Part shown: positions 3,027-63,988 of the stretch, in pieces
How positions within the stretch are numbered: position 1 is the stretch's first letter
How the letters are laid out: each line of letters opens with the position of its first letter
Virus record (IMG/VR): IMGVR_UViG_3300017917_003822
Location: 124,001-188,000 of that record
Length of the DNA: 64,000 bases
Reading direction: 5' to 3' (one strand)
Notes under the pieces: generated by a model
The model's input: only the letters and a program-made list of their open reading frames with translations
Databases searched by the model: none
What the model was told of the DNA's origin: nothing
Position numbers and translations under genes: made by a program

Positions 3027-3440
3027 ATGAAAAATATACTAAGTTTTAAAGATTACGAGCCCTCGGAGGAATATAAGACCGAATCGAGGAGATCACTTAA
3101 TCTGGATAGTGTTAGAAGATCTAAAGAGTATAAGAGAATAATAAAACTTGGATTTGAGGAGGAAACTTCGCATCAACAAGAGATAAACAACACCATGAAG
3201 TTTGTAAGATCCAAACATAAGCAGAAGGAGAAGGGACACGATGATGTCTTTTATACTATACATCCGACTGGAACTGTTAGAAGATATAATCCTATAAAAT
3301 CTGAGGATGTTCCTCAAGGTAACGGTAATGACATCAAAAAATTCATAGAACCTTTTGAAAAGCCTAAAGATTATATAAAGGGATTAAATTATTTATGGCA
3401 GTACCTAAAAAGAAAAGAAGCTAAAAAAGATTTCAGATAA
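3027..3440 (+). CDS. Hypothetical protein with CTS-like N-terminus (MKNILSFKDYE)
   Basis: ORF; GAATATATAC at 3014-3023 upstream. Confidence 0.7.
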   Translation: MKNILSFKDYEPSEEYKTESRRSLNLDSVRRSKEYKRIIKLGFEEETSHQQEINNTMKFVRSKHKQKEKGHDDVFYTIHPTGTVRRYNPIKSEDVPQGNGNDIKKFIEPFEKPKDYIKGLNYLWQYLKRKEAKKDFR

Positions 3441-3451
3441 TACAAGAAACT

Positions 3452-3688
3452 ATGAGTAACGATTGTGGATGCGGAGCAGTAAACATCTCCGATTATATTG
3501 AAAGAAAGCATGACAAGGAAATAAGCCTAATAATAAATAAATGGGTAATAGATAATCTTGGAAGGAAGCTTCTTATACAGGAACCTATCTACGATATATA
3601 TAAAGATATCATAGGATACATAACAAAAAACACTGACGGAAACACGGTCAGGATTTTTTCACATAACATAAAAGAAATACTGGATTAA
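3452..3688 (+). CDS. Hypothetical protein
   Basis: ORF tightly packed with neighbours. Confidence 0.6.
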   Translation: MSNDCGCGAVNISDYIERKHDKEISLIINKWVIDNLGRKLLIQEPIYDIYKDIIGYITKNTDGNTVRIFSHNIKEILD

Positions 3689-3689
3689 T

Positions 3690-4139
3690 ATGTTTTACCC
3701 AAAGCTAGAAAATAGATGCCTAGTCTGCATGAAGGACGAAGAGAATGAAATCGAGGAGGCTCTTTCAAATAAACAACCCTCAGAAATTCTTGATGCACTC
3801 ACCGAATGGTTAAATGAAAAATCATATTGTGTTGAGAAAGTGCAATTGGAAAAATATCTGGCAGACAGAGGAATAGTTATGAAGATCGAGGAAGATGATA
3901 TGGGCGGAGGTTCACCTGGTCCGGCTTTGGCCTCTTTGGGTGATGTTAATGGAATGGGTAATCCAACACCTCCTTCGAACGATGGAACTAATGCTGGTTT
4001 CTATGATGCAACGAAGAGTGGATCTGGGGATAGATTTACGACATTAACTGCTGGTACCCCCGCAGCTAAAAATAAGAAATATAAAAACTATAAATCACTT
4101 CTTTCATATGTAGATTTCATAAAAAAGAGAAAAAAATAA
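3690..4139 (+). CDS. Hypothetical protein, Gly/Pro-rich linker, basic C-terminus
   Basis: ORF followed by a terminator. Confidence 0.65.
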   Translation: MFYPKLENRCLVCMKDEENEIEEALSNKQPSEILDALTEWLNEKSYCVEKVQLEKYLADRGIVMKIEEDDMGGGSPGPALASLGDVNGMGNPTPPSNDGTNAGFYDATKSGSGDRFTTLTAGTPAAKNKKYKNYKSLLSYVDFIKKRKK

Positions 4140-4153
4140 TTTTTTTTAGTATA

Positions 4154-4182
4154 AAAAAAGCCTACCTAGAGTAGGCTTTTTT
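4154..4182 (+). terminator. Intrinsic terminator
   Basis: AAGCCTAC-CTAGA-GTAGGCTT followed by a T-tract. Confidence 0.8.
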
Positions 4183-4284
4183 GTTGACTTTTTGTCGGGT
4201 TGAATATCACCAATTATGACAATTTGTCCTAGTCTATTGTTTGGAATTGAATTTGATATATTTGAATTAAAAAAAATAAAATAT

Positions 4285-4659
4285 ATGAATTCGAAAAATT
4301 TTTACCAAACGGCTATAAGCTCACTGTTCGAAGGGAAATGCCCCGGAGATAACTTATTTAATAAATTCTTAGAATCAATTGATGATTCATGCAGAATCGA
4401 AAAAAAAGAATCCGGATGGGAATTAAGACTGGCACTCCCTGGGGTTACAAAAAATGAAACCGAAATTAAGGTGGATGGAAATAATCTTATTGTTAACATC
4501 GATTCTAAAAATGGGTGGGTTAAAAAATCTCAAAAGGCTTTTATTCTACCAAGATCAGCTAATCATGAATCTATATTTGCTGAGATGAAGGATGGAATAT
4601 TATCAATATCCATATCTACAAAGAATGATCAGAAATCTAAAAATATTAAAATAAATTAA
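4285..4659 (+). CDS. Hsp20/alpha-crystallin small heat shock protein
   Basis: LALPGV.K.E..IKVDGN.L...F.LP...[13 protein letters not shown]; start moved to ATG 4285. Confidence 0.85.
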
Positions 4660-4663
4660 GAAA

Positions 4664-6553
4664 ATGGCAAAAGTAATTGGAATCGATTTAGGTACTACAA
4701 ACTCATGCGTCTCCGTAATAGAGGGGAATTCTCCGGTTGTTATCGTTAACCAGGAGGGAAAAAGAACAACGCCTAGTGTTGTTTCGTTTAGAGAAGGTGA
4801 AATTAAAATAGGTGATCCTGCAAAAAGACAGGCAGTGACAAATCCCAAAAACACTGTTTATTCTGTTAAGAGGTTCATCGGATCTAATTTCGATGAGATT
4901 AAAAAAGAAGCCAAGAAGATGGCTTATACTGTAAAAGCAGGAAGTGATAAAAAGAAGGTGGTTGTTGAGACCACTGAGAAGGAATATGTTCCTCAAGAGA
5001 TATCAGCTATGGTACTTCAGAATTTAAGAAAGACCGCCGAGGATTATTTGGGTGAGGATGTTAGACAAGCTGTTATTACTGTACCTGCATATTTCAATGA
5101 CAGTCAGAGACAGGCAACCAAGGAGGCTGGAGAAATTGCTGGATTAGAGGTTTTGAGAATTATCAATGAACCCACAGCTGCTGCTTTAGCATACGGTCTA
5201 GATAAGGCAGATAGGGACATGAAGGTTATAGTTTATGATTTGGGCGGTGGTACCTTTGACGTTTCTGTTTTGGAAATTGGATCTGGTGTTTTTGAGGTTC
5301 TGTCAACAAATGGAGATACACATCTGGGTGGGGATAATTTTGATGAGAAAATTATCGATTGGATAGTTCAGGAATTTAAAACCGAATCTGGAGTTGATGC
5401 TTCACAAGATCCGATGGCATATCAAAGAATCAGAGAAGCGGCAGAGAAAGTTAAGGTTGAATTATCGTCCTCTATGGAGTCTGAGATCAATTTACCATAT
5501 TTAAGTGCAGATTCCACTGGACCTAAGCACTTTGTCAAGAAACTTTCCAGAGCACAATTTGAGTCTATGACATCTGATCTGGTTCAAAGAACATTAGAAC
5601 CTTGCAAAAAAGCACTATCTGATGCCGGATTAAAAGCGTCCGATATTGACGAGGTTATTTTAGTTGGTGGATCAACAAGAATACCTAAAGTTCAGGAGGA
5701 AGTTGAAAGATTGTTTGGAAAAAAACCTTCCAAGAATGTTAATCCCGATGAAGTAGTTGCTATTGGTGCTGCTATTCAGGGAGGAGTTTTAACTGGTGAG
5801 GTTAAGGATGTTCTTTTACTTGATGTTACTCCTCTTTCTCTCGGTATAGAAACTATGGGTGGTGTATTTACAAAACTGATCGAATCTAATTCGACCATAC
5901 CAATTAGAAAGAGCCAGGTTTTCTCTACTGCGGTTGATAATCAGCCATCGGTGGAAATCCATGTTCTGCAGGGGGAAAGAGCGATGGCATCTGATAATAG
6001 ATCACTAGGAAGATTTCAGTTAACTGACATTCCGCCAGCTCAAAGAGGAGTTCCGCAAATTGAGGTGACTTTTGATATTGATGCAAATGGAATTATTAGC
6101 GTTTCTGCTACGGATAAGGGAACAGGTAAACAACAGAACATTAAGATAGAATCTGGATCTAAGTTATCTGAGGAAGAAATTGAAAAAATGAAATCAGAAG
6201 CACAAGCTAACGAAGCTTCTGACAGAGAAAGATTAAAGAAAATCCAGATTTTAAACGACTCTGATTCTTTAATTTTTCAAATAGAAAGATCACTAAATGA
6301 TTTTGGTGATAAAGTTACTGAGAGCGATAAGGAGTCCGTTAACAAGATCATCTCTGAATTAAAGAATGCCAGAGAGAGTGAGGACGTTGATCTTATCGAA
6401 TCTAAAATGAAGGAATTGTCGGAGGAGATGTCTAAGGTCTCGGCTTCCGTTTATGCCTCACAAGAACAAAGTAACGAAACACAAGAAAATGAACATGCTC
6501 CGGAACCAGAGGATCACGAGGATATTGAGTTTGAGGAGGTTGAAGAAAAATAA
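4664..6553 (+). CDS. dnaK: Chaperone DnaK (Hsp70)
   Basis: [50 protein letters not shown]. Confidence 0.98.
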
Positions 6554-8719: not shown

Positions 8720-9021
8720 TCTTTCTTTTTGATTGACTTTTCTTTGAAGGATTCCTTAATGTAGTTTGTTATATCAGATCCTGATTTTTTACCCTCACTT
8801 AGAAATTTATTAAAATTCTCGGACTTCCCCTCCTGATCTAAAAAATCGTGGAAATAAGAAGCTTCGAACATTGCATCGTATACTTGTGGCATCGTCGGAT
8901 CGGTTGAGTGATAATTTCTTGATCTGACTCTATTTTCGTACGAATCCCCAGGAACGTCTATGCTTCCGGGTGAATCGATCCATTCATTTACGAAATTGTG
9001 AAATTTTTTTAGATTTTTCAT
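8716..9021 (-). CDS. Hypothetical protein with CTS-like N-terminus (MKNLKKFHNFVNE)
   Basis: Start reassigned to ATG 9021; GAATATATAC on the minus strand at 9036-9027. Confidence 0.7.
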   Translation of the reverse strand: MKNLKKFHNFVNEWIDSPGSIDVPGDSYENRVRSRNYHSTDPTMPQVYDAMFEASYFHDFLDQEGKSENFNKFLSEGKKSGSDITNYIKESFKEKSIKKKD

Positions 9022-9101
9022 ATAAAGTATATATTCACCCGGAACATAATTTCGAATCGGGGGTAAAACATCTACATTAATAAAGAACCAAAAGATCATA
9101 A

Positions 9102-10508
9102 ATGATAATTGACATTGAAAACAAAGGTACGTATCTCAGGGTTTCCCACTTTGGACCTGAAGGTGATTTAGCTTTTTTAGAGGTCCCTGTACCTGAAGAT
9201 CAGAGATTCAACTGGGAAAAATGCAGTCCACATGATCCCAAGAGAGATAAGGAATGGACGAATTGGATGGGTGAGCCAGTTAAGAGAGTTAAAACAGACA
9301 GATATGATAAATATCGGCTTGCACAGATTCTTATTGAGGCACCAGAAGAATTAACTAAGCCCTTATGGGAATTTCAGAATCCAAAAAAATACTTTGTCGA
9401 CATCGAGGTAGAGATAACGGAGGATATGGGAGCTGCTCTTGACACAGAGAATGCTAAAAATCGAGTTATCTCTATCGGGATCGCAACAGACAAAAGAAAG
9501 CTTATAGTTCTAGGTCTTGATCCCTTAACCCCCGAACAACAAGCCAGCATTTACAATAAACTTAATGAGTATTTCAAAAGTACTGGTGACGAATGGTCTT
9601 TCAAATACAAGCAATTCGAAACTGAGTATGATATGATGTACACGTTCTTCCGGGAACTTGGTCCTAAAATGCCGGTAATAACTGGATGGAACTGGCTTGG
9701 CTATGACTGGCCTTATCTAATTAATAGAGCAAAAAGGCTTGGGATAGATCCAAAGATAATTTCGCCTAGCGGAGTCCTTTTAGGTAAAGCACAACTTCCG
9801 ATGCATTTACTTATGTTTGACTACCTTGAAATCTATAAGAAGTGGGATCGCGTAATTAAGATCAAGGAAAGCAATAGACTTGATTATGTTGCAGATAAAG
9901 CTGTTGGATTTAAAAAGATAGAATATAACGGTACACTTAAAGATTTATATCAATCCAATTTCGAAGATTTTATTTACTATAACGCAGTTGACTGTGCGCT
10001 GGTTCATTATATAGATCAGAAGCTAAAAACCATGCAAACATTCTTTAAGATAGCTATGATTTCCGGTGTTGAGATCAATCGATGTCTTTCACCAGTTTGG
10101 TCAACCGAGGTTATGATGCTTAGAAAATTCCACGATAGAAAGCAGGTATTTACTTCAGAAAAAAAAGAGGAGGTTCATGTTAAGTTTGCTGGTGGGTATG
10201 TCAAAGATCCGCTAAAGGGACTACATGAATGGGTGGCATGCTATGATTTTGCCTCACTATATCCTAACACTATGGTTCAATGGGGGATTTCACCCGAAAT
10301 CTACAAAGGTAAAAATCTATTAAATCCCAAGGAAGAATGGGTAAAAACAGCTTCTGGTGCATTTTTCGGATCCGCCGAAGAGAATCCAATTCTCAGAACA
10401 ATTATTAAGGATTTGTACTCCAGAAGAAGAAAAACAAAGGACAGAATGCTAGAGTTGGAGCGAGAAATTGACCAACTAAAAAAAGTTTTAGAAAAAGATA
10501 AAAATTAA
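9102..10508 (+). CDS. Family B DNA polymerase, N-terminal subunit (exonuclease + motif A)
   Basis: ExoI FVDIEVE, ExoII TGWNWLGYDWPYL, ExoIII YNAVD, motif A YDFASLYP; ends in the fingers helix. Confidence 0.92.
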   Translation: MIIDIENKGTYLRVSHFGPEGDLAFLEVPVPEDQRFNWEKCSPHDPKRDKEWTNWMGEPVKRVKTDRYDKYRLAQILIEAPEELTKPLWEFQNPKKYFVDIEVEITEDMGAALDTENAKNRVISIGIATDKRKLIVLGLDPLTPEQQASIYNKLNEYFKSTGDEWSFKYKQFETEYDMMYTFFRELGPKMPVITGWNWLGYDWPYLINRAKRLGIDPKIISPSGVLLGKAQLPMHLLMFDYLEIYKKWDRVIKIKESNRLDYVADKAVGFKKIEYNGTLKDLYQSNFEDFIYYNAVDCALVHYIDQKLKTMQTFFKIAMISGVEINRCLSPVWSTEVMMLRKFHDRKQVFTSEKKEEVHVKFAGGYVKDPLKGLHEWVACYDFASLYPNTMVQWGISPEIYKGKNLLNPKEEWVKTASGAFFGSAEENPILRTIIKDLYSRRRKTKDRMLELEREIDQLKKVLEKDKN

Positions 10509-12190: not shown

Positions 12191-14677
12191 ATGCAAGTTG
12201 TAAAAAGAGACGGTTCTAAAGAACCGGTAAGGTTTGAGAAGATTTCTAACAGAATCAGAAAAATGACATATGGTTTAAATGCTGATTATGTTGACGCCAT
12301 GGAGATAGCACAAAAAGTAATTGCTGGTATTTATGACGGAATATCAACCCAGGAATTAGACAATTTAGCTGCAGAAACAGCAGCTTCACTTATTCCTAGA
12401 CACCCCGATTATTCAATTCTTGCTTCAAGAATTGCGGTTTCTAGATTACATAAAACAACAAAGAAAAAATTCTCGGAAACGATCCAAACTTTATATGACT
12501 ACATAGATCCTGAGACGAATCTTCCGGCTGGTTTAATTAATGAAGAAACTTATCAGACGGTAATGAAGCACAAACAAAAATTGGATGGTGCTATCATACA
12601 TGAAAGAGATTTTGAATTTGAATATTTTGGATTTAAAACACTGGAAAAAAGTTACCTATTAAAAACCCACGGTGAGGTCTGTGAAAGTCCTCAGCACATG
12701 TATATGAGAGTTTCAGTTGGTATTTGGGGAGAAGATATCAAGAACGTAATTAAAACTTATGAGCTACTTTCCAATCATATGGCCACTCACGCAACACCAA
12801 CATTATTCAATGCAGGTACTAAAAAACCACAGCTTTCTTCTTGCTTCTTATTGACCGTATCCGATGACTCCATTGCTGGAATTTATAAAACTCTTTCTGA
12901 CGTAGCTATTATTTCACAGAATGCTGGTGGAATAGGTTTAGCTATCCATAATGTCAGAAGTACAGGTTCTTATATCAGAGGAACTAACGGTACCTCAAAC
13001 GGAATTGTACCAATGCTTAAAGTTTTCAACGAAACTGCAAGATATGTAGATCAGGGAGGGGGTAAAAGAAAAGGATCTTTCGCAATTTACTTGGAGCCTT
13101 GGCACTCTGATATTGAGGATTTCTTAGATCTAAGAAAGAATACTGGTAAGGAAGAATTAAGAGCTAGAGATCTTTTCCTAGCATTATGGACTCCTGATCT
13201 TTTCATGAAGAGAGTTAAAGAGGATGGAATCTGGAGTTTATTCTCACCATCTGAAGTTCCTGGTCTTTGGGAAAAATATGGAGATGAATTTGAAAAAGCA
13301 TACACCGAAGCTGAGGAAGCTGGTAAGGCAAGAAAAACCATTAAAGCTAGGGATTTGTGGACAAAGATTATAGAATCACAGATAGAAACAGGAACACCTT
13401 ATATGCTGTATAAGGATGCTGCAAATAAAAAATCAAACCAGAAGAATTTAGGTACCATTAAGAGTTCAAACTTATGTACTGAAATTTTGGAATATACAGA
13501 TAAGGACGAACAAGCAGTTTGTAACTTGGCTTCGATCCCAGTTAACAAGTTCCTAAAATCAACTGATGCTAGAACATCTAAGATTTGCAAAGGAAGATGT
13601 GAGGTTGACCATAATGCTCTTTATGATGTTGCATATCAGATAACATTGAACTTAAATAAGGTTATTGACGTTAACTACTATCCAACTCCTGAGACTAAAA
13701 AATCAAATTTAAGACATAGACCTATTGGTATAGGTATTCAAGGTCTGGCTGATTTGTTTGCAATTATGGGTATTCCTTTTGCATCACCAGAAGCCAAAAG
13801 AATTAACGAGGAAATATTCGAAACTATTTATTTTGCCGCAATGTCAGCCTCAATGTATTTGGCCAAGAGAGACGGTAAATATGAAACTTTCGATGGTTCA
13901 CCATTAAGTCAAGGACAATTCCAATTTAATTTATGGGGATTTGAGGACAAAGACCTTTCTGGAAGATGGGATTGGGACAAATTAAGAAAGGATGTGATGA
14001 AGCACGGAGCTAGAAACTCTTTATTATTAGCTCCTATGCCAACAGCTTCTACAGCTCAGATTATGGGTAACAATGAGGCATTCGAACCTTTCACCTCGAA
14101 CATCTACACTAGAAGAACTCTTAGCGGTGAATTTATATTAGTTAACAAGCACCTAGTTAAGGATTTGATTGCTCTGGATCTTTGGAGCGAAGATATGAAG
14201 AATTTGATCATCTTACATAAAGGATCTGTTCAGAACATACCTCAAATTCCTGAAAATATAAGAGAAACATATAAAACAGTTTGGGAAATAAAGCAGAAAG
14301 ATCTAATTGAGATGTCTGCCGGTAGAGGTAAATTTATTTGTCAATCCCAATCACTAAATTTGTTTATTGAGAATGTTAATTCTGCTAAACTTACTGCTGC
14401 ACACTTCCACTCTTGGGAACTTGGTCTTAAAACGGGAATGTATTATCTAAGAACAAAATCTGCTGTTGATGCTATTGCAGGTTTGGGAATAGACATGGAG
14501 AAAGCTAAGAAAGCTCAGAAACTTGCCGATGAGGGATCTCTGATTCAAGAAAAAAGGGAATCTAAAATAGATCTTGGTATGACTAGCGAAGAACTCAGTA
14601 AAGCTGCAGAAGAAGTTGCATCTGGGATAACATGCAGTCTGGATAACCCCGACGATTGTATAGCATGTGGATCTTAA
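12191..14677 (+). CDS. nrdA: Ribonucleotide reductase class Ia alpha subunit with ATP cone
   Basis: VVKRDG ATP cone, [38 protein letters not shown]-terminal CIACGS. Confidence 0.98.
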
Positions 14678-14699
14678 ATATATAGAATAAAAAACCGAG

Positions 14700-15320
14700 A
14701 TGGAAAATATAGTTAAAAGTTTTAGTGGATTTTTAAATGAAAGAGAATTACCAGACGAACAAGGTGACATCCTAGTTATGCTAGGAGCACCAGGTTCTGG
14801 TAAAGGTACACTTTCCAAAGAACTCCAGGATAAGTATGGAATACATCATATTTCCACCGGAGATCTCATCAGAAAATCTGATGATCCGGAGCTTAAAAAA
14901 ATCATAGACGGTGGTAATTTTTTACCCGATGATATGATGATTAAGATTTTAAGGAAAGAACTTAAAAAAGTGGATGTAACTAAAGGAATAATATTTGATG
15001 GTTTTCCAAGAACTATCAAACAAGCTAAAAGACTTGATTCCATGCTAGGTAAAATGGGTCTTGGTCTTAATCATGCAATCTTTTTGGATCTTCCTGAAGA
15101 AACTGCCAAAAATAGAATCAGAGAAAGAGCTAAGAAGGAGGACAGAAAGGATGACACCAGTGACGAGATCATCAACAAAAGGTTCGATGAATATCACGAG
15201 AAAACATTTCCTCTTTTAGATTTCTACAAGAGAAGCAGAAAACTAATAAAGATTGATGCATCTGAAGGCAAGGAGGGAGTATTAAAATCAGTTTCTAAAA
15301 AACTGGGATTGAAGAAATAG
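14700..15320 (+). CDS. adk: Adenylate kinase (short LID) with CTS-like N-terminal extension
   Basis: GAPGSGKGT, HISTGDLIR, FDGFPRTIKQA, R.DD. Confidence 0.93.
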   Translation: MENIVKSFSGFLNERELPDEQGDILVMLGAPGSGKGTLSKELQDKYGIHHISTGDLIRKSDDPELKKIIDGGNFLPDDMMIKILRKELKKVDVTKGIIFDGFPRTIKQAKRLDSMLGKMGLGLNHAIFLDLPEETAKNRIRERAKKEDRKDDTSDEIINKRFDEYHEKTFPLLDFYKRSRKLIKIDASEGKEGVLKSVSKKLGLKK

Positions 15321-15337
15321 CTAATAAAACCAAATAA

Positions 15338-15985
15338 ATGGAAAAAACCAGTGGGGATTTTGTAAAATCCTTGAAGGATAAAATTAGCAAACAGAAAAAG
15401 CAGGAGAAATTTCAGAGAAATATATTGCACGATTCCCTTGATTATTTAGTATCGATAATCAAGGGATCTTCGCAAATAGAGCTAAGATCAGTAAAAAATT
15501 TTAAGACCAGCGAGATCTCTTGCTTTTTAAATCTGTATTGCGAATCCGATGATATCCCATCATCAATAGAGTCTCTATTTAATGAGAATAATCTGGACTT
15601 TCGAAAGGTACAACTCGATGAAAAAAAATTTTTATACCTGGTGGACTTCGGTGAAAATATCGTGTCCTCCGGGAGTGAACATAATTGGTTCTTTTTAGAG
15701 TTTTATTTTAAGGGAAAATACATATTTGAATCTAAATTGACCACTAATAGCGACGATCTTTTCTATTCTGTATTCGATAGAAAATATTACGGTATAAAAT
15801 TTTGGGTGTGCGACAATCTAGAATTATCTGTTTATGAATTTCCGATAAGAAATTTTGATAGAAATAAAAATAAAACAAAGGTTGATCTTGACGAGAAATA
15901 TTCTCTTACGATCCTGTTTGATCAGGTTGGAGAGGTAGAAAAAATAAATATTTCCAGAAGAATAGGGAGAAAAAAAGAGAAATGA
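15338..15985 (+). CDS. Hypothetical protein
   Basis: ORF in operon. Confidence 0.6.
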   Translation: MEKTSGDFVKSLKDKISKQKKQEKFQRNILHDSLDYLVSIIKGSSQIELRSVKNFKTSEISCFLNLYCESDDIPSSIESLFNENNLDFRKVQLDEKKFLYLVDFGENIVSSGSEHNWFFLEFYFKGKYIFESKLTTNSDDLFYSVFDRKYYGIKFWVCDNLELSVYEFPIRNFDRNKNKTKVDLDEKYSLTILFDQVGEVEKINISRRIGRKKEK

Positions 15986-17293: not shown

Positions 17294-17340
17294 AAAGTAT
17301 TTCCGTGAGGATATATAGAGAAAAATATTTTTTTAAAGTA

Positions 17341-17892
17341 ATGAAGCATCTTTTAGAATACGAGAGTTACTCTCCAGTAAATGAATTTGAGGTTAAGGGT
17401 GGAGTTCCGGTTTATAACGAACCAGAATTTGTTAAGAACCCTAAAATGAAACCTGCTATGATGATAAAAACTCCCGAAATTATCTCGGTTGTTGATGATT
17501 TTATCAAAAAGCAAGAAAATGGTGATATTGAATCAATCGCGGTTGTGGCTGATATACCAACTCAGGGAAAGAGAGTACCTACTTACGTTGCAGATGAATT
17601 GGCAGCAGAGAGAAAAAGAATGGCTGCAAGAAAAGCTGCTATCTACGGAAGTAGAATAGAAAGAGCTGATAGACCTGAGGATGAGGATTACACCGACGAG
17701 ATCAATATTTTCGTAGATTCTGAGTTTGTTGTTAAGGGTGTGATTAACAAATTAGGTAAGGATTACGTGATAGGTATACCTGCTTCACATAAGAAAAAAG
17801 CAGAGGCTAGTAAAGATGCTGAGGAATATTACTCTACCTACATCGAGCCTAACCAGATTTTTGAAATTTATTTTACCCCAAAAAATAAATAA
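17341..17892 (+). CDS. Hypothetical protein with CTS-like N-terminus (MKHLLEYESYSPVNE)
   Basis: Start reassigned to ATG 17341, after GATATATA 17310. Confidence 0.7.
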   Translation: MKHLLEYESYSPVNEFEVKGGVPVYNEPEFVKNPKMKPAMMIKTPEIISVVDDFIKKQENGDIESIAVVADIPTQGKRVPTYVADELAAERKRMAARKAAIYGSRIERADRPEDEDYTDEINIFVDSEFVVKGVINKLGKDYVIGIPASHKKKAEASKDAEEYYSTYIEPNQIFEIYFTPKNK

Positions 17893-42291: not shown

Positions 42292-42310
42292 TTGTTGATA
42301 TATAAAAAAC

Positions 42311-45342: not shown

Positions 45343-45344
45343 TA

Positions 45345-47669: not shown

Positions 47670-47702
47670 AACTAAATATATAGAGGAAAATATAACTATT
47701 AA

Positions 47703-48296: not shown

Positions 48297-48343
48297 GAAA
48301 CTTAACCAAAAAAAGATATATAATAAAAATAAAAAATATAAAC

Positions 48344-48805: not shown

Positions 48806-48832
48806 TTAAAAACCACAAATATCAATATATCA

Positions 48833-48860
48833 CAGGGGGCAGATTAATCTGCCCTTTTTT
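48833..48860 (+). terminator. Intrinsic terminator
   Basis: GGGCAGA-TTAA-TCTGCCC followed by a T-tract. Confidence 0.8.
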
Positions 48861-48907
48861 ATTGAAACTAATTTAAAACCATTCCATATGATATTAAAAA
48901 TCACATT

Positions 48908-49540: not shown

Positions 49541-50166
49541 TGAACAAAGTTAAGTACACAGAGAAACAAATTCAGGATGCTTTAGAAAAGCATTATGATA
49601 AGAGTGGAATAAAGTACACAGTCAGTAATTTATATCTGTTTAAGTACAATTGGGAAACTGATTTTCTCGTTGTCCAGAAGGCTTCCAAATACTGCTACGA
49701 AATAGAAATAAAAACTAGCAGAGCGGATTTCTTTAATGATTTCAAGAAAACAGAGAAACACACGATACTTAAAGAGGGTACACACCAGGTAAAAAAATAT
49801 CGTTATAAATATGACCCGGTGACTAAAAGAAACACCCCGGACCATTATTACGAGACTCAGGAATGGAAATTCAGGCCCAATAGATTCTATTATTGCGTAC
49901 CTGAAGATCTAATAAAACCTGAAGAGGTTCCTGATTATGCAGGTCTGATGTATATTAACGATACAAATAAAATCCGAATAGTAAAGGAAGCAACATTTCT
50001 ACATAAAGAAAAACTTGAGTTAATTAAGCCTCTCTGTGACAAGTTTTATTACTACTGGAAAAATGCAAGATCTGCCAATCTTATACTCGAGAAAAAGATT
50101 AATGAATACAAAGAAACTTACAATATAAGCGAATCTAAAAAACCTAAAAAATTCAAAGAAAAATGA
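49540..50166 (+). CDS. PD-(D/E)XK nuclease-like protein (MmcB-like)
   Basis: ETDFL...YEIEIKTSRADF, FYYCVP. Confidence 0.7.
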   Translation: MNKVKYTEKQIQDALEKHYDKSGIKYTVSNLYLFKYNWETDFLVVQKASKYCYEIEIKTSRADFFNDFKKTEKHTILKEGTHQVKKYRYKYDPVTKRNTPDHYYETQEWKFRPNRFYYCVPEDLIKPEEVPDYAGLMYINDTNKIRIVKEATFLHKEKLELIKPLCDKFYYYWKNARSANLILEKKINEYKETYNISESKKPKKFKEK

Positions 50167-52473: not shown

Positions 52474-53115
52474 ATGGAAGATTTAGATAAAAAATACCAG
52501 TCTCTTTTGCAAGATGTTCTTAATAATGGGGTAACAGAGGAGAAACTTTTAGAAATAAAAGAATACTCAGAGAAACAAATTGAGAAAATTAGACAAGAGG
52601 AAGAAAATGAAATCAGGAGGAAAAATTCAGTAAAAAATAAAACTAAATTATCTCAGCTTACATCAGATGATAGAATTTTAGGGATAAGAATTTCATGGAA
52701 TGATGATTCTAAAGGAGTTAAGATAGATGAATTAGGTAATAGTTGGTCTGTTGATATAATTGGGTATTGTGATGTTAGAGGGTATGAGGATAAGAAAAAG
52801 AGAAAAAGTGACTATCATAGAATATCAATTAGTCATAAAAAAGAAGCGTTTGGCCACGCAGTATCACTGACTGATGAGGAATCAGAAAATCCATATTTAC
52901 TAGTTATTGATACTATGGGAAATGGGTACGATTCTTTTTTCACTTTATCACCTGAGACTTGGGAAGAAGATTTAATGAAGGCTTTAATCGACCAAAAAGA
53001 ATGGAGAATTAGACAGCATCATAGAGAAATTTCAATCTTAAGAAAAAAAGTTGGAGCTTTCTTAAAAAGTAAAAATAAAATCAATAAATTCATAAAGAAT
53101 GAACAATCTAGATAA
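52474..53115 (+). CDS. Hypothetical protein beginning with a copy of the ThyA N-terminus
   Basis: MEDLDKKYQSLLQDVLNNGVT matches the next gene's start. Confidence 0.65.
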   Translation: MEDLDKKYQSLLQDVLNNGVTEEKLLEIKEYSEKQIEKIRQEEENEIRRKNSVKNKTKLSQLTSDDRILGIRISWNDDSKGVKIDELGNSWSVDIIGYCDVRGYEDKKKRKSDYHRISISHKKEAFGHAVSLTDEESENPYLLVIDTMGNGYDSFFTLSPETWEEDLMKALIDQKEWRIRQHHREISILRKKVGAFLKSKNKINKFIKNEQSR

Positions 53116-54319
53116 ACAATACCAAGCACTTCTTCAAGACATTCTTGATAATGGGGTAACAAAACAAGACCGTACAGGAACGGGAACAATCTCAGTATTT
53201 GGAAGACAAATCAGACATAAAATGTCAGAAGGGTTTCCACTTCTTACAACTAAGAAAATGCCATTCAAAACCATCGTAACAGAACTTCTTTGGTTCTTAC
53301 GAGGTGATACAAACATCAAATACTTGGTTGATAATAATTGCCATATTTGGGATGGAGATGCTTATAAGAATTATTGCAAATCATTTGAAAATCAATCAAT
53401 TTTGGATAAGTATTCGTTTGATACAGACCCAATCACAATAGAGATGTTTGTTGAGAAAATCAAAACAAATAATGAGTTTGCTAAAAAGTGGGGTGAATTA
53501 GGTCCAATTTACGGTAAGCAATGGAGAAGTTGGGTAAGAGGTGTTGATTATGATGTTGATTATGAAAATGGAATACAGGATGAAATAGACCAAATAACAA
53601 ACTTAATCAACGACCTTAAAACAAATCCAGACTCAAGACGATTAATGGTTAATGCTTGGAATGTTGGAGAATTAGACCAAATGGTTCTTCCACCTTGTCA
53701 TTATGGATTTCAAGTTTATACAAGAGAGTTGAGTGATAGTGAAAGAGCAAAATTATACGAACAGAAAACAAATGTAGACACTTCTTTCTTTCCTGTTCTT
53801 AGAGAAACATTAGATTTTCACAACATTCCAACCAGAGCAATCTCTTTAATGTGGAATCAACGTTCAGTAGATACATTCTTAGGTTTACCATTTAATATTG
53901 CATCGTATGGGCTATTGCTTGAAATTATTGCAAAGGAAGTAAATATGGTTCCTGATGAATTGATTGGTAATTTAGGTGATGTTCATTTATATTCAAATCA
54001 TATTGAACAAGCAAAAGAGCAAATTGGTCGAGAGCTTACATGGGAAGAAAAAATCCAATGGGTAATGAAGAACACTGATGTCGAGCTTGAGAACCTGTAC
54101 ATAACTGAAGCAGCTGCTGCTTTAGAAGCAACAACTAGGTGGCCATACCCTCTACCAACATTAAAAGTCAGTTGGTATATCGATAATTGGAATACTCCAG
54201 AAGCTAAAGAAGTTAGGAAAAACGAGTTTGACGCTTATATAAGACAAATGAGGACTAGTGATTTCATTCTTGAAAATTATAAATCACACCCAGCAATTAA
54301 AGCACCTTTAAGCAATTAA
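53099..54319 (+). CDS. thyA: Thymidylate synthase (with insertions)
   Basis: DRTGTGT, FPLLTTKK, ELLWFLRG, GPIYGKQWR, LPPCH, RSVDTFLGLPFN, HLYSNH. Confidence 0.97.
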   Translation: MNNLDKQYQALLQDILDNGVTKQDRTGTGTISVFGRQIRHKMSEGFPLLTTKKMPFKTIVTELLWFLRGDTNIKYLVDNNCHIWDGDAYKNYCKSFENQSILDKYSFDTDPITIEMFVEKIKTNNEFAKKWGELGPIYGKQWRSWVRGVDYDVDYENGIQDEIDQITNLINDLKTNPDSRRLMVNAWNVGELDQMVLPPCHYGFQVYTRELSDSERAKLYEQKTNVDTSFFPVLRETLDFHNIPTRAISLMWNQRSVDTFLGLPFNIASYGLLLEIIAKEVNMVPDELIGNLGDVHLYSNHIEQAKEQIGRELTWEEKIQWVMKNTDVELENLYITEAAAALEATTRWPYPLPTLKVSWYIDNWNTPEAKEVRKNEFDAYIRQMRTSDFILENYKSHPAIKAPLSN

Positions 54320-54332
54320 ATTAATTTTAAAT

Positions 54333-55229
54333 ATGGAAACATTAAACATCGAAAGAGATACAATATCTCTTGAATTCAGAGATGATGAATTCTTAAACAC
54401 AGCATTTAAAATAAAAATGCAAAGCCCTCATGGAACAATATCCTACTTGGTACCGACTTTGGATGATGCTGGAAATATGTCATTAAATGTTCAGCATAGA
54501 ATGGTCGAGGCATCCGGATATGAAACATCTTCAACCACATCAAAGGAATCTTTAGCTGATCTTTCGAGATTTAATATAGATGCGGAAGGCGAGATCATCA
54601 AAGCGATAGATAACGAGTCACTCATCACATCTCAAAGAAGACTAAAATCAATCTATTACGATCTCGGAAAAAAATCCAGGATGGGCTCGTATGGAAAGTG
54701 GAAATCATTCCTAAACAAGCATCTGGGTATCGATTTCCCGCTGTATGTTTCTGACGATGAAGATATTTGCAAGAAGATATTTTTACTGAGTAATCTGATT
54801 GCAGCTGGATCCAGAAGAGGTCCCGCTAATTTCATAATAGTTTCTGGTGGTATGTGGGCCAGGATAGCTCTGGACCCCTCATGTGTAATCTACGAGAATA
54901 ACAACGATTCTGTCCCTTTTATTCGTCCGGTTGGCAATATTGCAAATAAAATTAACGTCTTTGTAGATTCGTCAACATCTTTCAACAATGGTCTAATCAT
55001 AATGGGAATTAAGACTGAATCCCCATACCCTGGAGTTTTATTTGGCCAGTATTCCAGAGAGGTTTTAAAAATTGACAGCTACGATCCATTTAGCTTTTTA
55101 CCCAATGTTGAATATAAGCTGATTGAAAGATATGCTTTAAGAGATTTTGGTGACCCCGAAAAATGCTATTATACAAACGAAATATTAAATGAAAAGAAAC
55201 CTCTCTGGAGAAGATTGATCGGTGCTTAA
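54333..55229 (+). CDS. T4 gp23/gp24-like capsid protein paralogue (C-terminal part)
   Basis: IAAGSRRGPANFIIVS and VGNIANKINVFVD...IIMGIK resemble the gp23 RG.GNFII and G.L....VYID regions. Confidence 0.6.
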   Translation: METLNIERDTISLEFRDDEFLNTAFKIKMQSPHGTISYLVPTLDDAGNMSLNVQHRMVEASGYETSSTTSKESLADLSRFNIDAEGEIIKAIDNESLITSQRRLKSIYYDLGKKSRMGSYGKWKSFLNKHLGIDFPLYVSDDEDICKKIFLLSNLIAAGSRRGPANFIIVSGGMWARIALDPSCVIYENNNDSVPFIRPVGNIANKINVFVDSSTSFNNGLIIMGIKTESPYPGVLFGQYSREVLKIDSYDPFSFLPNVEYKLIERYALRDFGDPEKCYYTNEILNEKKPLWRRLIGA

Positions 55230-55290: not shown

Positions 55291-56400
55291 ATGAGTAAGA
55301 AGAATCAAGAAACAAGCAAGGAATTTTTAAGGGAGTATTTAAATGGATATTCCCCAGTTGCACAGGAAACTGAGGGTCAAAAGATCTGGATCGACTACGT
55401 AAAGGACCTGGTGGGGTTTAGTAATGTTAAGATGGATGCTTATGGTACGGCCTACGCAATAAAGTTTGGTGACCAGCCAGATTTATCATACAGATTTGGT
55501 GAAAGGTATAAAGTTGTAATAGAAGCACACTGTGACGAGATTGCTTGGATCGTAACTTACATAGAGAAGGACGGATTTCTGAGGGTAAAAACCCACGGTG
55601 GATCCGACAACATGATCGCACCATCAAAAACTGTGTTGGTCCACACCCACAACGAAACCAAAGTTAAGGGTGTCTTCGGTTCACCTGCCATTCACGTTAG
55701 AGAAAAAAGAACGGAGATGGGCACTGAGGTGCATGATCTGTGGATAGATCTTGGAGTGGATTCCGATGAGAAAGTAAAAGAGCTTGGTGTTGAAGTTGGT
55801 AACATCGTAACATTCGATACTCAATTTGACGAGATTGGAGATTACTATGTTGGAAGATCATTAGACAACAAGATAGGCGGGTATATCATTGCGGAGACTT
55901 TAAAGAATCTAAAGGATGAGAAACTGCCATACGATCTTTATGTTGTAAATGCGGTGCAAGAGGAAGTTGGATTATTTGGAGCCCGATTAATTGCACAGAC
56001 AATCAAACCTGATATTGCTCTGGTTCACGATGTGTGTCACAACACAAATCACCCTAAAATGAACAAAGCTAAGGACGGAGACATCAAAGGTGGTGAGGGT
56101 CCTTGTTTGGAATACACCGCTCAGAACCACAGAAAAATCATCAAGATGTTCAAGGAAGTTGCTTCAATGAATGAAATTAAGTTACAGAACACAATCGGTT
56201 CTTACGGTAACGATACAGTTTCTTTCTTCCTAGAAAATATACCGACCGCTATCGTTGCTTCCCCGTTGAAATATATGCACACGACAGTTGAGATGGTTCA
56301 CAAAAGGGATGTTGAAGATGTCATTAGGTTGTTTACTCACACCCTAAGAGAGATCACACCGGAATGGATAGATTCCGTCAAATATCCGAAAATCCAATAA
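55291..56400 (+). CDS. M42 family aminopeptidase
   Basis: IEAHCDEI, RSLDNKIG, VQEEVGLFGA, HDV, MHTTVE. Confidence 0.93.
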   Translation: MSKKNQETSKEFLREYLNGYSPVAQETEGQKIWIDYVKDLVGFSNVKMDAYGTAYAIKFGDQPDLSYRFGERYKVVIEAHCDEIAWIVTYIEKDGFLRVKTHGGSDNMIAPSKTVLVHTHNETKVKGVFGSPAIHVREKRTEMGTEVHDLWIDLGVDSDEKVKELGVEVGNIVTFDTQFDEIGDYYVGRSLDNKIGGYIIAETLKNLKDEKLPYDLYVVNAVQEEVGLFGARLIAQTIKPDIALVHDVCHNTNHPKMNKAKDGDIKGGEGPCLEYTAQNHRKIIKMFKEVASMNEIKLQNTIGSYGNDTVSFFLENIPTAIVASPLKYMHTTVEMVHKRDVEDVIRLFTHTLREITPEWIDSVKYPKIQ

Positions 56401-61271: not shown

Positions 61272-61765
61272 TGGAAAATAGAACTTATCGAATGTATGGG
61301 TTAGTCCCCTATAATATAAGTCCGATACAGCAAGGTATCCAATTTGGACATGCAGTTGTTGAGTATGGCTTAGAGTTTGGTAGCACTCCAGCTTATCAAA
61401 AATGGGCAAGAGAGGATAAAACATTTATCATTCTAAATGGAGGAACCACCAACATGAGATATGATGAGGACAATCATATTGGTTCTTTAAACAACCACAG
61501 GCAACTGTTGTTCGATAATGGAATCCAATTCAGTAGCTTCTTTGAGCCGGATTTGGGCGACCAATTAACTGCGGTGGTTTTCTTGGTGGATGATAGAGTT
61601 TTTGATAAAAAGACTTGGCCGGATTATGATGGACCTCTCTATATTGACGGAACCCCTGAATACACCGAATACTGGCATTGGAAAATGGAATTTGATGAAT
61701 CGGAAGCGGAAGCTGATCGAATCATATTTCTAAGAGAATTTTTAAAACAATTTAGATTTGCATAA
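61271..61765 (+). CDS. Peptidyl-tRNA hydrolase 2 (PTH2)-like protein
   Basis: GIQFGHAVVEY, KTFIIL.G, FFEPDLGDQLTAV. Confidence 0.65.
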   Translation: MENRTYRMYGLVPYNISPIQQGIQFGHAVVEYGLEFGSTPAYQKWAREDKTFIILNGGTTNMRYDEDNHIGSLNNHRQLLFDNGIQFSSFFEPDLGDQLTAVVFLVDDRVFDKKTWPDYDGPLYIDGTPEYTEYWHWKMEFDESEAEADRIIFLREFLKQFRFA

Positions 61766-62328
61766 TGAAGGTGATATTTCTAGATAATGATGGAGTAATT
61801 TGTCTCCATAATAATTGGGGTGGGCGTTCAAAAAAATGGAAAAAGTTTAAAAAACTTAATCCTGATGCAATCAACGATAAATCCGCACCAGTTGATGTTA
61901 GATTTGATGATTTCGACAAAAAGGCTATTAAGATATTAAATAACATACTCGAAGAAACCGGTGCTGAAATCGTAGTAAGCTCAGATTGGAAACTCCACGC
62001 AAGCCTGGAAGAGCTTGGTGAATATTACGAAGCACAGGGGATCATCAAAAAACCGATTGCGATAACACCAAATCTTGGGGATTTTGATCCGGGCGCTAAT
62101 GATCTATTCATGTGGAAAAGATGGCTGGAAAAAAAGAGAATCCTGGAGATTCAGGAGTACCTGGAAAGAAATCCTGATATAACTCACTGGGTTGCTGTGG
62201 ATGATTTAAACATGAGCCCAGCATCAAACGGGGGATATGGTCTTGAGAATTTTGTACTGACACCCAGATCAACCGAGGGCATAAAACAACTAGGAATAAA
62301 AGAATCAATAATTAAACACTTAAATTAA
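61765..62328 (+). CDS. Second HAD domain protein (Swiss Army Knife RNA-repair-like)
   Basis: IFLDNDGVI, IVVSSDWK, R..EI, WVAVDDL. Confidence 0.85.
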   Translation: MKVIFLDNDGVICLHNNWGGRSKKWKKFKKLNPDAINDKSAPVDVRFDDFDKKAIKILNNILEETGAEIVVSSDWKLHASLEELGEYYEAQGIIKKPIAITPNLGDFDPGANDLFMWKRWLEKKRILEIQEYLERNPDITHWVAVDDLNMSPASNGGYGLENFVLTPRSTEGIKQLGIKESIIKHLN

Positions 62329-62334
62329 AGAATT

Positions 62335-63090
62335 ATGTTTACATTTTTTAAAAAATTATTTAGAAAGAGATCTTTAGCAGAAAGGGAACAAGCACACCTT
62401 TTTGGTAATTCTTCTACCTCCGATGGGTTGGATAGATCTTTCCTTTTTGATTTTAAAAACTATCAATCAGGTTACAGAGATAATAGCAATATTACGGTGG
62501 GCACTTTTCTAATGAGCGGCAGCACTACAGGTGGCGATAACGATAGTAACGACGTGAAGAAAGAGACCAAGAGAAAAATAGAGGTTAAACCAATAGATGT
62601 TCTGAATGAGTTGGAAACTATTCCGACCCCTTGGAATCTGTCCAATCTGGATGACAAGATCTCTATACTGGAATATAAAAGGGATCTAATTACACAGAAG
62701 TACTCAAGAAGAGAGGTTGAAGCGATGATAGAGCGTCTGCAGAACAGAAAAAAATGGCATAAATTTAAAGACTTCTTCACAGGATTCCAAAACACAACCG
62801 ACGAAAAGATCGAGGATCTGTTGGACAAATACGATCTTGTAATGAAAACATCGGATCTTTTTGTACCAGAGTTTCCTGACGAGGCCATAAATATCATGAA
62901 GAGCTACAGTGACAATATGATGAAGCTTTGTAAAAAGAAACCAGTTTTCTATGTCATAGCAGAACCAGATAAATTCAAAAAAGCCTGGGAGAAAAGAGAT
63001 CCAATCTTGCTGGTGCAAAGTCCATTTGGGTTCTATTGGCAGATACTTGGTGCATGGGATAAGGAAATGATACTTTTGGGTGAACTATAA
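62335..63090 (+). CDS. Hypothetical protein
   Basis: ORF ending RDPILLVQSPFGFYWQILGAWDKE. Confidence 0.65.
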   Translation: MFTFFKKLFRKRSLAEREQAHLFGNSSTSDGLDRSFLFDFKNYQSGYRDNSNITVGTFLMSGSTTGGDNDSNDVKKETKRKIEVKPIDVLNELETIPTPWNLSNLDDKISILEYKRDLITQKYSRREVEAMIERLQNRKKWHKFKDFFTGFQNTTDEKIEDLLDKYDLVMKTSDLFVPEFPDEAINIMKSYSDNMMKLCKKKPVFYVIAEPDKFKKAWEKRDPILLVQSPFGFYWQILGAWDKEMILLGEL

Positions 63091-63596
63091 TGAAGAATCA
63101 ATTTGATGATGCATTCTACCCTCTAATATGGGCACACGTACAACAATATCAAAGGTGCGTCAGTGAATACGGGGGGAAGGAAAGAATAACAAAAAAGGTC
63201 AAGGAGTCATTAAACTCGTGTGTTCAGAAATGGTCAGATTTACCAGCAACAATGGCTTCCTCCAGCGTTATTGAATTCTTTAATTCAAAATTTCCTCATC
63301 TCGATCCTGCCAAGATAACGTGGCACCAGAAATACCTTGTTGGCAGAGATGATAAAAAGAGAGGGATGATAGTGTGGGAACACACAACCCCATTAAATAT
63401 ACTTCTCAAGGAACTGATAACAAAGAAAAATCAGAGGGAGATAAATGAATGTATGAATTCATATTCGGGGGTTTGTTTAATTACCAGGGAGGAGGATGAT
63501 AGGTTAAATGCTAGTGGATTTAGATGTGTAAGGCCTGGAGGCTGGGAAAAATGCTACAGTGATTGTGGGATTGAAGTCATCAAGTTGGATATATAA
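63090..63596 (+). CDS. Hypothetical protein, possibly HNH-related
   Basis: WEHTTP...CLITREEDDRLN. Confidence 0.5.
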   Translation: MKNQFDDAFYPLIWAHVQQYQRCVSEYGGKERITKKVKESLNSCVQKWSDLPATMASSSVIEFFNSKFPHLDPAKITWHQKYLVGRDDKKRGMIVWEHTTPLNILLKELITKKNQREINECMNSYSGVCLITREEDDRLNASGFRCVRPGGWEKCYSDCGIEVIKLDI

Positions 63597-63616
63597 TGTA
63601 AATAAAAGATCATAAG

Positions 63617-63988
63617 ATGGAACACATTTTACCATACGAAGCAATCAACGAAGGTGCAGCAGCACTCCCAGCGATGCCTTCTTTTCTCAAATCAGCTGGA
63701 GCTAAACCTACATATGTTCAATACGGAGGTCCGAGAAAAACAAATCAACCACCAAATGCCTGGGAACTAAGGGTACCAGCACCATCCGGGGTTAGCAAGG
63801 AAGAATGGGTAATTACTTTCTTTCCGGACGGATCTTTTAACACAGGGGCAGGATCACAAAAGAATTTTTTAAGAAGTAGCGGTGAATGGAAAGCTGATGC
63901 ATCATCGGATTTTATTTTCGGAACTAAAGCTATCAAGGGGGTTTCTATGAAATTCAACTCGTATATGAGATTGACTCCACTAAATTAA
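63617..63988 (+). CDS. Hypothetical protein with CTS-like N-terminus (MEHILPYEAINE)
   Basis: GATATATA at 63588. Confidence 0.65.
   Translation: MEHILPYEAINEGAAALPAMPSFLKSAGAKPTYVQYGGPRKTNQPPNAWELRVPAPSGVSKEEWVITFFPDGSFNTGAGSQKNFLRSSGEWKADASSDFIFGTKAIKGVSMKFNSYMRLTPLN

Follow-up and report, generated by a model that had tools for sequence, protein, structure and literature searches.

What do nine otherwise unrelated phage proteins share that they should all begin alike? The question is raised by a 64-kb stretch of DNA, referred to below as the window, which corresponds to bases 124,001 to 188,000 of the 270,629-bp metagenomic contig Ga0192394_135162 (JGI 3300017917; IMGVR_UViG_3300017917_003822). 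The products of nine genes of the window start with a short segment, the tag, whose core consensus is [FY]-x-x-[FY]-[LIV]-N-E, and no similarity between tagged proteins is detectable beyond it. Comparison of ortholog sequences shows that the tag is a separate module selected at the protein level. We consider it likely that this module is a capsid targeting sequence of the bacteriophage T4 type, combined with a cleavage site for the prohead protease. The portion of the contig that was read extends from 38.6 to 217.3 kb (~179 kb, two thirds of the genome) and contains 210 open reading frames (ORFs). It was assembled by a walk relying on exact-protein look-ups and on the retrieval of related loci, with zero conflicts among overlapping pieces. 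Coordinates refer to the window unless they are assigned to the contig.

The tag as a separate protein module

The nine N-termini had been noticed in an initial annotation of the window, and all of them translate as written there. Of the 90 ORFs of the window, 7 display the pattern [FY]-x(1-4)-[LIV]-N-E within their first 16 residues, for an expected number of 0.37 based on its internal rate. In the 179 kb, a looser core-plus-site pattern was found at 14 of the 210 N-termini, when 3.1 were predicted from the internal rate (p = 6e-6). Shuffling of the N-termini, which had been proposed as a control, gave 2.9 matches on average and never more than 8 in 500 shuffles. The density of [LIVM]-N-E motifs with the Glu at residues 10 to 19 was 3.8 times the density past residue 100. 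The number of tagged proteins, initially put at about nine, is an undercount for the 179 kb, which encode ~21 such proteins among 210 if shorter variants are included, the ~12 additional genes being located elsewhere on the contig. The protein encoded at contig position 118764 starts with M-N-I-K-S-F-D-D-F-I-A-E, which is close to the T4 leader M-K-T-Y-Q-E-F-I-A-E. Several tagged genes adjoin head and baseplate modules. Pattern counts and shuffling replaced an hmmsearch with a 13-residue tag profile from the uncultured phage LR756500, which returned fragmentary local matches.

In LR756500, a relative of the phage with a G+C content of 24%, at least 24 proteins start with M-K-Y-I-x-x-Y-x-x-F-[LIV]-x-E, including several leucine-rich-repeat (LRR) proteins and a metallopeptidase-VWA protein. 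The tag is more uniform in that genome. Tags of the same form are also present on portal-proximal genes of LR756500-like IMG/VR contigs.

In two enzymes of the window, the tag is located outside the conserved fold. The segment from 14677 to 15320 (plus strand) comprises the promoter-like sequence AATATATA (14677-14684) followed by a gene for an adenylate kinase (Adk) with a 22-residue N-terminal extension, which carries the tag MENIVKSFSGFLNE (14700-14741). The Pfam ADK domain covers residues 27 to 179, and alignment with the solved Adk 4jlo pairs residue 24 with residue 2 of that structure. Two orthologs (86% and 70% identity) retain F-x-x-F-(x)-L-N-E, followed by R-E-L-P-D. The segment from 26642 to 28133 (plus strand) comprises the promoter-like sequence GATATATA (26642-26649) and a gene for a 485-residue RimK-like ATP-grasp ligase, which has ~21 extra N-terminal residues and the tag MSGRKILNFFSFLNE (26676-26720). 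The Pfam RimK domain of this protein covers residues 122 to 325, and residue 38 aligns to residue 17 of the solved glutamate ligase 7qyr. At the other end of the ligase, the ~155 C-terminal residues past the ATP-grasp domain (residues 330 to 485; 27663-28133) have no family match.

All 40 orthologs of the RimK-like ligase retrieved from IMG/VR (60 to 90% identity) retain L-[ND]-F-x-x-F-[LI]-N-E, with ATATATA upstream in nearly all cases, and the residues flanking this core differ both in sequence and in length. Among 18 distinct DNA versions of the tag, there is no variation in the residues L, F, F, L, N, and E, each of which is encoded by two to six synonymous codons, while the x positions are occupied by five to seven different amino acids. 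Conservation of the core despite codon change rules out an explanation at the level of the nucleotide sequence or of translation start. In the orthologs of Adk and of the proteins encoded at 9021, 17341, and 28717, the aromatic core is likewise kept, and the spacer and the residue preceding the Glu are variable.

The gene following that of the RimK-like ligase (28143-28355, plus strand) begins 9 nt past the ligase stop codon and lacks a promoter motif of its own. It encodes a 70-residue protein with the tag MENLKPFKQVNE (28143-28178). Some of the 39 orthologs of this protein are tagged by M-E-N-L-K-E-F-G-x-[IVL]-x-E, whereas others begin directly at the sequence E-K-T-E-K-I-Q of the protein body, and ATATATA precedes some of the tagless genes. 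The presence of the tag in only part of the orthologs indicates that it is a module that can be gained or lost, as expected of a transferable address label.

The remaining tagged proteins of the window are small. A basic protein of 137 residues is encoded in the segment 3015-3440 (plus strand), in which AATATATA (3015-3022) is separated by 4 nt from the ATG of the tag MKNILSFKDYE (3027-3059). In one ortholog, which starts with M-K-N-L-K-K-F-K-D-Y-D, the aromatic pair is kept and D replaces E. On the minus strand, in the segment 8716-9035, AATATATA (9035-9028) is followed by the gene for a 101-residue protein (9021 down to 8716) with the tag MKNLKKFHNFVNE (9021-8983), whose F-x-x-F core and [LV]-x-E end are kept in two orthologs. 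The segment 17310-17892 (plus strand) contains GATATATA (17310-17317) and encodes a 183-residue protein with the tag MKHLLEYESYSPVNE (17341-17385). Twelve orthologs retain L-L-E-F-x-x-[FY] followed by a spacer of variable length ending with [LMV]-[NDK]-E. The upstream GTG at 17305 was rejected as the start codon of this gene in favor of the ATG at 17341, which is conserved among the orthologs. An acidic protein of 106 residues is encoded in the segment 28705-29037 (plus strand), behind AATATATA (28705-28712). Its tag is MRKILEFDDYLE (28717-28752), and 39 orthologs retain [IL]-[LIF]-E-F-x-x-[FY]-[LMIV]. The segment 63588-63988 (plus strand) contains GATATATA (63588-63595) and encodes a basic 123-residue protein with the tag MEHILPYEAINE (63617-63652), for which no ortholog was found among the loci retrieved. 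The weakest of the nine tags belongs to a very acidic protein of 153 residues encoded in the segment 48315-48805 (plus strand), with GATATATA at 48315-48322 and the tag core MENKIASFEEF at 48344-48376. There is no immediate [LIV]-x-E, the closest motif being V-T-E at residues 17 to 19, and no ortholog was found among the loci retrieved. The start of this protein resembles that of a 380-residue protein encoded downstream of the capsid gene (contig 49805; see below).

Overall, seven of the nine tags contain the aromatic pair [FY]-x-x-[FY], the proteins encoded at 28143 and 63617 having one aromatic residue. The strict consensus initially derived for the set, M-x-x-[IL]-x-x-[FY]-x-x-[FY]-[LVI]-N-E, describes six of its members and fails for those at 3027, 28717, and 48344. 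The tag ends with [LIV]-N-E in six cases, with Y-L-E at 28717, and with Y-E at 3027, and has no such end nearby at 48344. Searches of Pfam and PHROGs gave no match for seven of the nine proteins (including those encoded at 3027, 9021, 17341, and 63617), and nothing exceeded the Pfam cut-offs for ten further tag candidates encoded elsewhere on the contig. A tenth candidate in the window, a 95-residue protein (36715-37002, plus strand) starting with MANEFKISTEFKSINE, matches the objective tag pattern. It was set aside as doubtful, since RATATATA is missing upstream and the orthologs retain just F-K-x-I-x-E-P-[ST], which runs into the conserved body. The segment probably belongs to the protein proper and does not represent a tag.

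The initial annotation had also linked the tag to the octamer RATATATA, claimed to lie just upstream of every gene of the set except 28143. This claim was borne out, the motif ending 4 to 26 nt before the ATG for eight of the nine genes and being missing for 28143. The co-occurrence test that had been proposed yielded an odds ratio of 8.4 for the 179 kb (Fisher p = 8e-5). The raw number of RATATATA motifs is weakly above chance (18 versus 10.5 +/- 3.5; 4 of 100 shuffles reach 18). The ATATATA sites of the 179 kb are distributed between the gene strand (49 sites) and the other strand (13 sites), and 35 of these 62 sites are located at most 45 nt upstream of a start codon on the same strand, a zone representing 2.3% of the positions (p = 6e-41). 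RATATATA also precedes untagged genes encoding the protease-scaffold described below, a gp25-like baseplate protein, fibre proteins, lysis-type enzymes, and a transfer-messenger RNA (tmRNA), indicating that the tag does not simply arise from the promoter or the 5' end. Given the structural and lysis genes located behind it, the motif behaves as a putative late promoter. For three tagged genes (3015-3029, 9019-9035, and 28705-28719), the gap between the motif and the ATG is 4 to 6 nt, so that the mRNAs would be leaderless or nearly so.

Three other loci of the window are associated with the motif. The tmRNA (33039-33525; ARAGORN tag peptide EVEYAVAA; full-length match to Rfam RF00023 with 59.3 bits for a cut-off of 47) begins 6 nt past RATATATA (33039-33046) and therefore appears to be a late transcript. 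At 42297-42411, GATATATA is followed by ~107 nt free of ORFs before the next gene. This stretch, which has no Rfam match at the gathering threshold, could correspond to a long leader or to a small RNA. Finally, a very acidic 108-residue protein (28352-28714, minus strand) is encoded divergently from the gene at 28717, the overlapping ATATATATAT palindrome being its promoter-like site. Its C-terminus, V-L-S-Y-S-E-F-L-S-S-N-stop, resembles the tag core at the opposite end of a protein.

Head machinery and comparison with T4

The contig encodes a candidate prohead protease outside the window (contig 46011-47960), preceded by the putative late motif. The N-terminal part of this 649-residue protein matches the Pfam family of T4 gp21 (Peptidase_S77, PF03420; 29.2 bits for a cut-off of 27). 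A tblastn comparison with T4 gp21 gave an E value of 3e-5, the motifs of the catalytic His (G-E-L-D-H-P) and Ser (S-S-R-x-x-G) align with their T4 gp21 counterparts, and identity with the LR756500 homolog is 34% over the full length. L-N-E ends at residue 9 of the protein, which is also where L-I-E ends in T4 gp21 (PMC9026906). In total, the protein contains seven [LIVM]-N-E sites for 1.03 expected, the strongest enrichment among the 210 proteins. The protease is fused to a scaffold part composed of 13 tandem, in-register repeats of 14 residues, each of which displays the tag pattern in the form Y-x-x-Y-[LVI]-[AG]-E. In the AlphaFold prediction, the repeat region forms a single continuous helix (predicted local distance difference test [pLDDT] score of 90).

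The gene that follows the protease-scaffold gene (contig 47991-49709) encodes a gp23-type major capsid protein (Pfam Gp23, 146 bits). At residue 43, this protein has the sequence Y-H-S-L-N-E, followed by S. The site precedes the conserved mature domain and does not vary among 34 distinct relatives. In the capsid proteins of LR756500 and of Tenacibaculum phage PTm1, [LI]-x-E falls in this column of the alignment. Assignment of S-L-N-E as the cut site was based on these two relatives and on its position with respect to the mature domain, not on alignment with T4. Downstream of the capsid gene, the 380-residue protein mentioned above (contig 49805) starts with a tag-like core, contains Y-H-S-V-N-E at residue 42, and is Lys/Glu rich and scaffold-like. 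Within the window, at 54333-55229 (and 55291-56400), a 298-residue protein is paralogous to the C-terminal half of the major capsid protein. It scores 35.8 bits on Pfam Gp23 and matches residues 282 to 537 of the LR756500 capsid protein. This paralog gene is far from the true capsid gene and adjoins an M42/M20 peptidase gene.

The T4 record offers a direct comparison. As stated in the initial annotation, MKTYQEFIAE is present at the start of T4 internal proteins, namely, IPII and IPIII. Alt starts with MELITELFDE, and F-G-S-F-L-T-E precedes the mature part of gp23. Protease gp21 cleaves after L/I-x-E, and IPIII needs no more than its first ten residues to be packaged (PMC9026906). Mutagenesis of IPIII has revealed that residues 4 and 7 are mainly involved in targeting and residues 8 and 10 in processing, an Asp at position 10 stopping processing but not targeting (PMC9026906). 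The conserved positions of the contig tag, [FY], [FY], [LIV], and E, correspond to positions 4, 7, 8, and 10 of IPIII. By extension of the Asp-10 result, orthologs with D in place of E would still be packaged.

T4 and this phage thus have in common leaders of 10 to 20 residues at the N-terminus of otherwise unrelated proteins, in which two aromatic residues three apart (Y4 and F7 in T4) are followed by a hydrophobic residue, any residue, and Glu (I8 and E10 in T4). Both also have an S77 protease for [LI]-x-E, identified here by its sequence, and a capsid protein of the gp23 type that has a propeptide. Tagged genes are expressed from late promoters in T4, of which the RATATATA motif shared with structural and lysis genes is the putative counterpart in this phage. 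An enzyme is part of the cargo in T4 (Alt; PMC9026906, PMC3012670), and Adk and the RimK-like ligase are the putative equivalents in this phage. The two systems differ in scale, since T4 tags 4 proteins, whereas ~21 were counted here over two thirds of the genome and LR756500 has at least 24. Unlike in T4, there is a strong preference for Asn ahead of the Glu, the length preceding the core is variable, and the protease is fused to a scaffold containing 13 repeats of the tag motif. The tagged proteins themselves have no similarity to the T4 internal proteins or Alt. The analogy with T4 capsid targeting is supported at the level of sequence by the position of the tag outside the folds, the unrelated cargo, the match to the T4 positions, the S77 protease, the gp23 site, and the scaffold repeats. 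By analogy with the T4 internal proteins and Alt, we infer that the tagged proteins would be present in virions, bind to the scaffold, and be cleaved, retained, and injected before transcription. This most likely mechanism is that of the initial annotation, to which we add mimicry of a scaffold repeat by the tag.

The following sequence of events can be proposed. The tagged genes would be transcribed from the RATATATA late promoter alongside head, baseplate, fibre, and lysis genes. The first 10 to 20 residues of their products would be a short amphipathic stretch, in which a hydrophobic residue comes after two aromatic residues spaced three apart, and which would bind to the core of the assembling prohead. 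The tag would probably dock on the helical scaffold fused to the protease as a mimic of one 14-residue repeat. After closure of the gp23-type shell, the gp21-family serine protease would cleave after the Glu of [LIV]-[N/A]-E, thereby fragmenting the scaffold, removing the capsid propeptide at S-L-N-E(43), and clipping the tags. The peptides would then exit, leaving the cargo devoid of its tag trapped inside the head. At the next infection, the DNA would be ejected together with adenylate kinase, the RimK-like ligase, and numerous small proteins of high charge. If the tag is a mimic of the scaffold repeat, any protein acquiring the 10-residue label would co-assemble with the core and be freed by the cuts that dismantle the scaffold.

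Two other protein-loading systems can be compared with the tag. The phiKZ-like giant phages (phiKZ, 201phi2-1, and SPN3US) load dozens of proteins, including enzymes, into their heads, and phiKZ gp175, a distant homolog of gp21, removes propeptides after Glu (PMC9026906, PMC5694885, PMC7411985). In contrast to the tag, the propeptides of these phages are long and varied, the cut motif is not L/I-x-E, and no short, transferable N-terminal label recognizable by its sequence is reported (PMC9026906, PMC5694885, PMC7411985). The phage does not belong to this group, its nearest relatives being LR756500, the Lak megaphages, PTm1, and T4-like phages and its motif being [LIV]-N-E on a leader of 10 to 20 residues. 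In encapsulins, a short terminal peptide is sufficient to direct unrelated enzymes inside an HK97-fold shell. Encapsulin peptides bind directly to the shell, are usually C-terminal, and are not cleaved, whereas the tag includes a protease site and is scaffold-like. The likeness to encapsulins is one of mode of working, not of membership, as the gp23-type capsid gene occurs in a context of tail, baseplate, and packaging genes and the tag ends with a protease motif.

Competing explanations

Several observations weigh against capsid targeting and processing. Cleavage after N-E had been predicted for the whole set, and the site motif is indeed present in six of the nine tags of the window; the other three (3027, 28717, and 48344) do not have a clean [LIV]-x-E. 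Some orthologs of the protein encoded at 28717 have D or S at the position expected for E, indicating that the targeting half of that tag is under more constraint than the cut site. Depletion of internal [LIVM]-N-E sites in tagged proteins is not significant (4 versus 6.4 expected; p = 0.24). The S-L-N-E of the capsid protein is not in the alignment column of the T4 gp23 cut site. No portal gene was found between 38.6 and 217.3 kb of the contig; the walk from 188 to 217 kb revealed no head genes, a tblastn search of contig 58-207 kb with T4 gp13 to gp24 gave nothing significant, and a search of IMG/VR with a portal alignment (LR756500, PTm1, and T4) matched 80 LR756500-like contigs, not this one. 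Tag matches were at background levels in the cultured relative PTm1 (95 kb sampled), in Flavobacterium phage MaF61 (100 kb sampled), and in Lak-A1 (150 kb sampled, with TAG read as a sense codon). The phage is uncultured and known solely from metagenomes. Finally, we know of no precedent for adenylate kinase, an unusual housekeeping-type enzyme in this role, as capsid cargo.

The main rival explanation retains the prohead and dispenses with delivery: the tag would be a propeptide that brings proteins to the prohead core for assembly alone and is removed, the proteins being additional core or scaffold constituents, or helpers that are degraded or expelled, and not retained and injected. T4 core proteins gp67, gp68, and gp22, which contain gp21 sites, do not remain in the head (PMC9026906), and the tagged, Lys/Glu-rich, scaffold-like protein of 380 residues encoded after the capsid gene, with its second site Y-H-S-V-N-E, would fit among them. 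However, most tagged proteins combine a single N-terminal site with an ordinary folded body, as in Adk and the RimK-like ligase, which is the pattern of the retained internal proteins and Alt of T4 and not that of a scaffold fragmented at many sites, and the strongest excess of cut sites among the 210 proteins resides in the protease-scaffold. Several tagged genes are located beside head and baseplate modules, as an assembly role would predict, whereas the enzymes without an obvious role in assembly and the LRR proteins of LR756500 better match delivery. We therefore regard a function limited to assembly as improbable. Destinations other than the capsid and chance are poorly supported.

The tag could alternatively address proteins to a target other than the capsid, such as the phage DnaK, DnaJ, and HSP20 chaperones, the membrane, or degradation, its likeness to T4 being convergent. 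The phage does encode these three chaperones, and a hydrophobic-aromatic core with basic flanks is similar to a generic Hsp70-binding segment. Such a destination, which we judge to be very unlikely, accounts neither for the invariant N-E after the core nor for the presence of the motif at the boundary of the capsid propeptide, at residue 9 of the protease, and in the 13 repeats of the scaffold. It also leaves unexplained the putative late-promoter coupling with structural genes and the residue-for-residue match to the positions mapped in T4 (PMC9026906).

That there is no protein signal at all, and that the tags reflect AT-rich codon bias after the start, a constraint on leaderless starts, or chance matches picked by eye, is hardly credible: the genome is AT rich and many of its proteins start with M-K-N or M-E-N, three tagged genes begin 4 to 6 nt past the motif, and the raw number of RATATATA motifs hardly exceeds chance, but the conserved residues lie 7 to 15 codons into the genes and are kept through two to six synonymous codons while their neighbors change, shuffled N-termini reach 8 matches at most versus 14 observed, other genes behind RATATATA have no tag, and at least 24 proteins of the relative with 24% G+C carry a tag that is more uniform still.

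Relatives of the phage and neighboring genes

The gene set of the phage fits that of the aquatic "moraphages" (PMC12619734), which would make it a distant T4-like lineage infecting Bacteroidota. Moraphages are large aquatic phages whose predicted hosts are Flavobacteriia and for which DnaK and DnaJ are lineage features (PMC12619734). No match to cultured phages was obtained by megablast with 20 kb of the window, the topoisomerase and the Gp23-like protein of the window gave matches of just 24 to 30% identity, and the core proteins of the contig are 22 to 30% identical to those of T4. The contig has T4-type genes for gp32, a UvsW-like helicase, gp13, a gp6-like baseplate J protein, and a gp5-like hub, as well as genes for HSP20, DnaK, and DnaJ, and TAnnTTTG sequences of the Bacteroidota promoter type precede some of its genes. 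Based on the gp6-like protein, the closest relatives are the 462-kb uncultured LR756500 (37% identity), the Lak megaphages (35%), and other huge phages. The contig shares with moraphages and LR756500 DnaK and DnaJ, T4-like gp13, gp6, gp25, UvsW, and gp32, the prohead protease and capsid genes, kinship to the Lak phages, and host promoters of the Bacteroidota type. LR756500 is syntenic with the contig across the baseplate, fibre, and replication modules and possesses gp20-, gp21-, and gp23-like genes. As judged from the genomes compared, the tag system is a mark of the branch comprising moraphages and LR756500, not of all relatives. The article on moraphages does not describe tags, the words "N-terminal" and "packaged" being absent from it (PMC12619734), and the tag system appears to be previously unreported in this lineage.

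The tagged genes of LR756500 (e.g., 13446-15898, 197835-199531, and 313382-316693) occur in clusters of tandem paralogs, some members of which are LRR proteins. The gene located directly upstream of several of these tagged starts ends with D-F-G-F-[FL]-D-N-stop.

Returning to capsid targeting, a broader proposal may be advanced tentatively, with somewhat less confidence than even: a widespread clade of huge Bacteroidota phages comprising the moraphages and LR756500-like phages (hundreds of IMG/VR contigs) would pre-load about a tenth of its proteome by means of a scaffold-mimicking label corresponding to one unit of a 13-fold coiled-coil repeat. To our knowledge, capsid targeting sequences have been experimentally resolved just in T4 and its close relatives, in which four proteins use them. 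The sequences analyzed here would extend the T4 logic to enzymes and, at five to ten times the scale, to a very distant lineage of uncultured huge phages. If so, sequence alone would be enough to predict which proteins are injected by hundreds of these uncultured phages, providing a shortlist of factors for host takeover in the first minute of infection and for anti-defence. The cargo would extend beyond small anti-restriction proteins to metabolic and modifying enzymes (adenylate kinase, the RimK-like ligase, and the metallopeptidase-VWA protein) and to LRR binders. We know of no account of how a capsid targeting sequence binds to the core in T4, and mimicry of the repeat would provide a concrete structural hypothesis for this interaction. 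The tag and the protease-scaffold would also constitute a compact, portable system for capsid loading, of the type that already serves as a T4-based tool.

Other genes of the window were noted as well. The phage chaperones HSP20 and DnaK and a DnaJ-like protein, the latter recognized from sequence alone, are encoded at 4216-6553 and 21336-22379. The family B DNA polymerase is split into an exonuclease/N-terminal piece (9102-10508) and a C-terminal polymerase piece (24970-26118) located ~14 kb apart, and each piece has a separate homolog in LR756500. The segments 43390-47669 and 52474-54319 contain two large multidomain glycosyltransferase genes, one with an FkbM methyltransferase domain, and two adjacent thymidylate-synthase-like genes, whose products of 213 and 406 residues have nearly identical N-termini. 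These genes suggest DNA base modification, as annotated in PTm1. Finally, the sole G+C-rich stretch of the window (21-2984; 43% versus ~36%) encodes a 987-residue fibre protein with collagen repeats and a C-terminal S74 intramolecular chaperone domain, and public gene calls place ORFs on the opposite strand.

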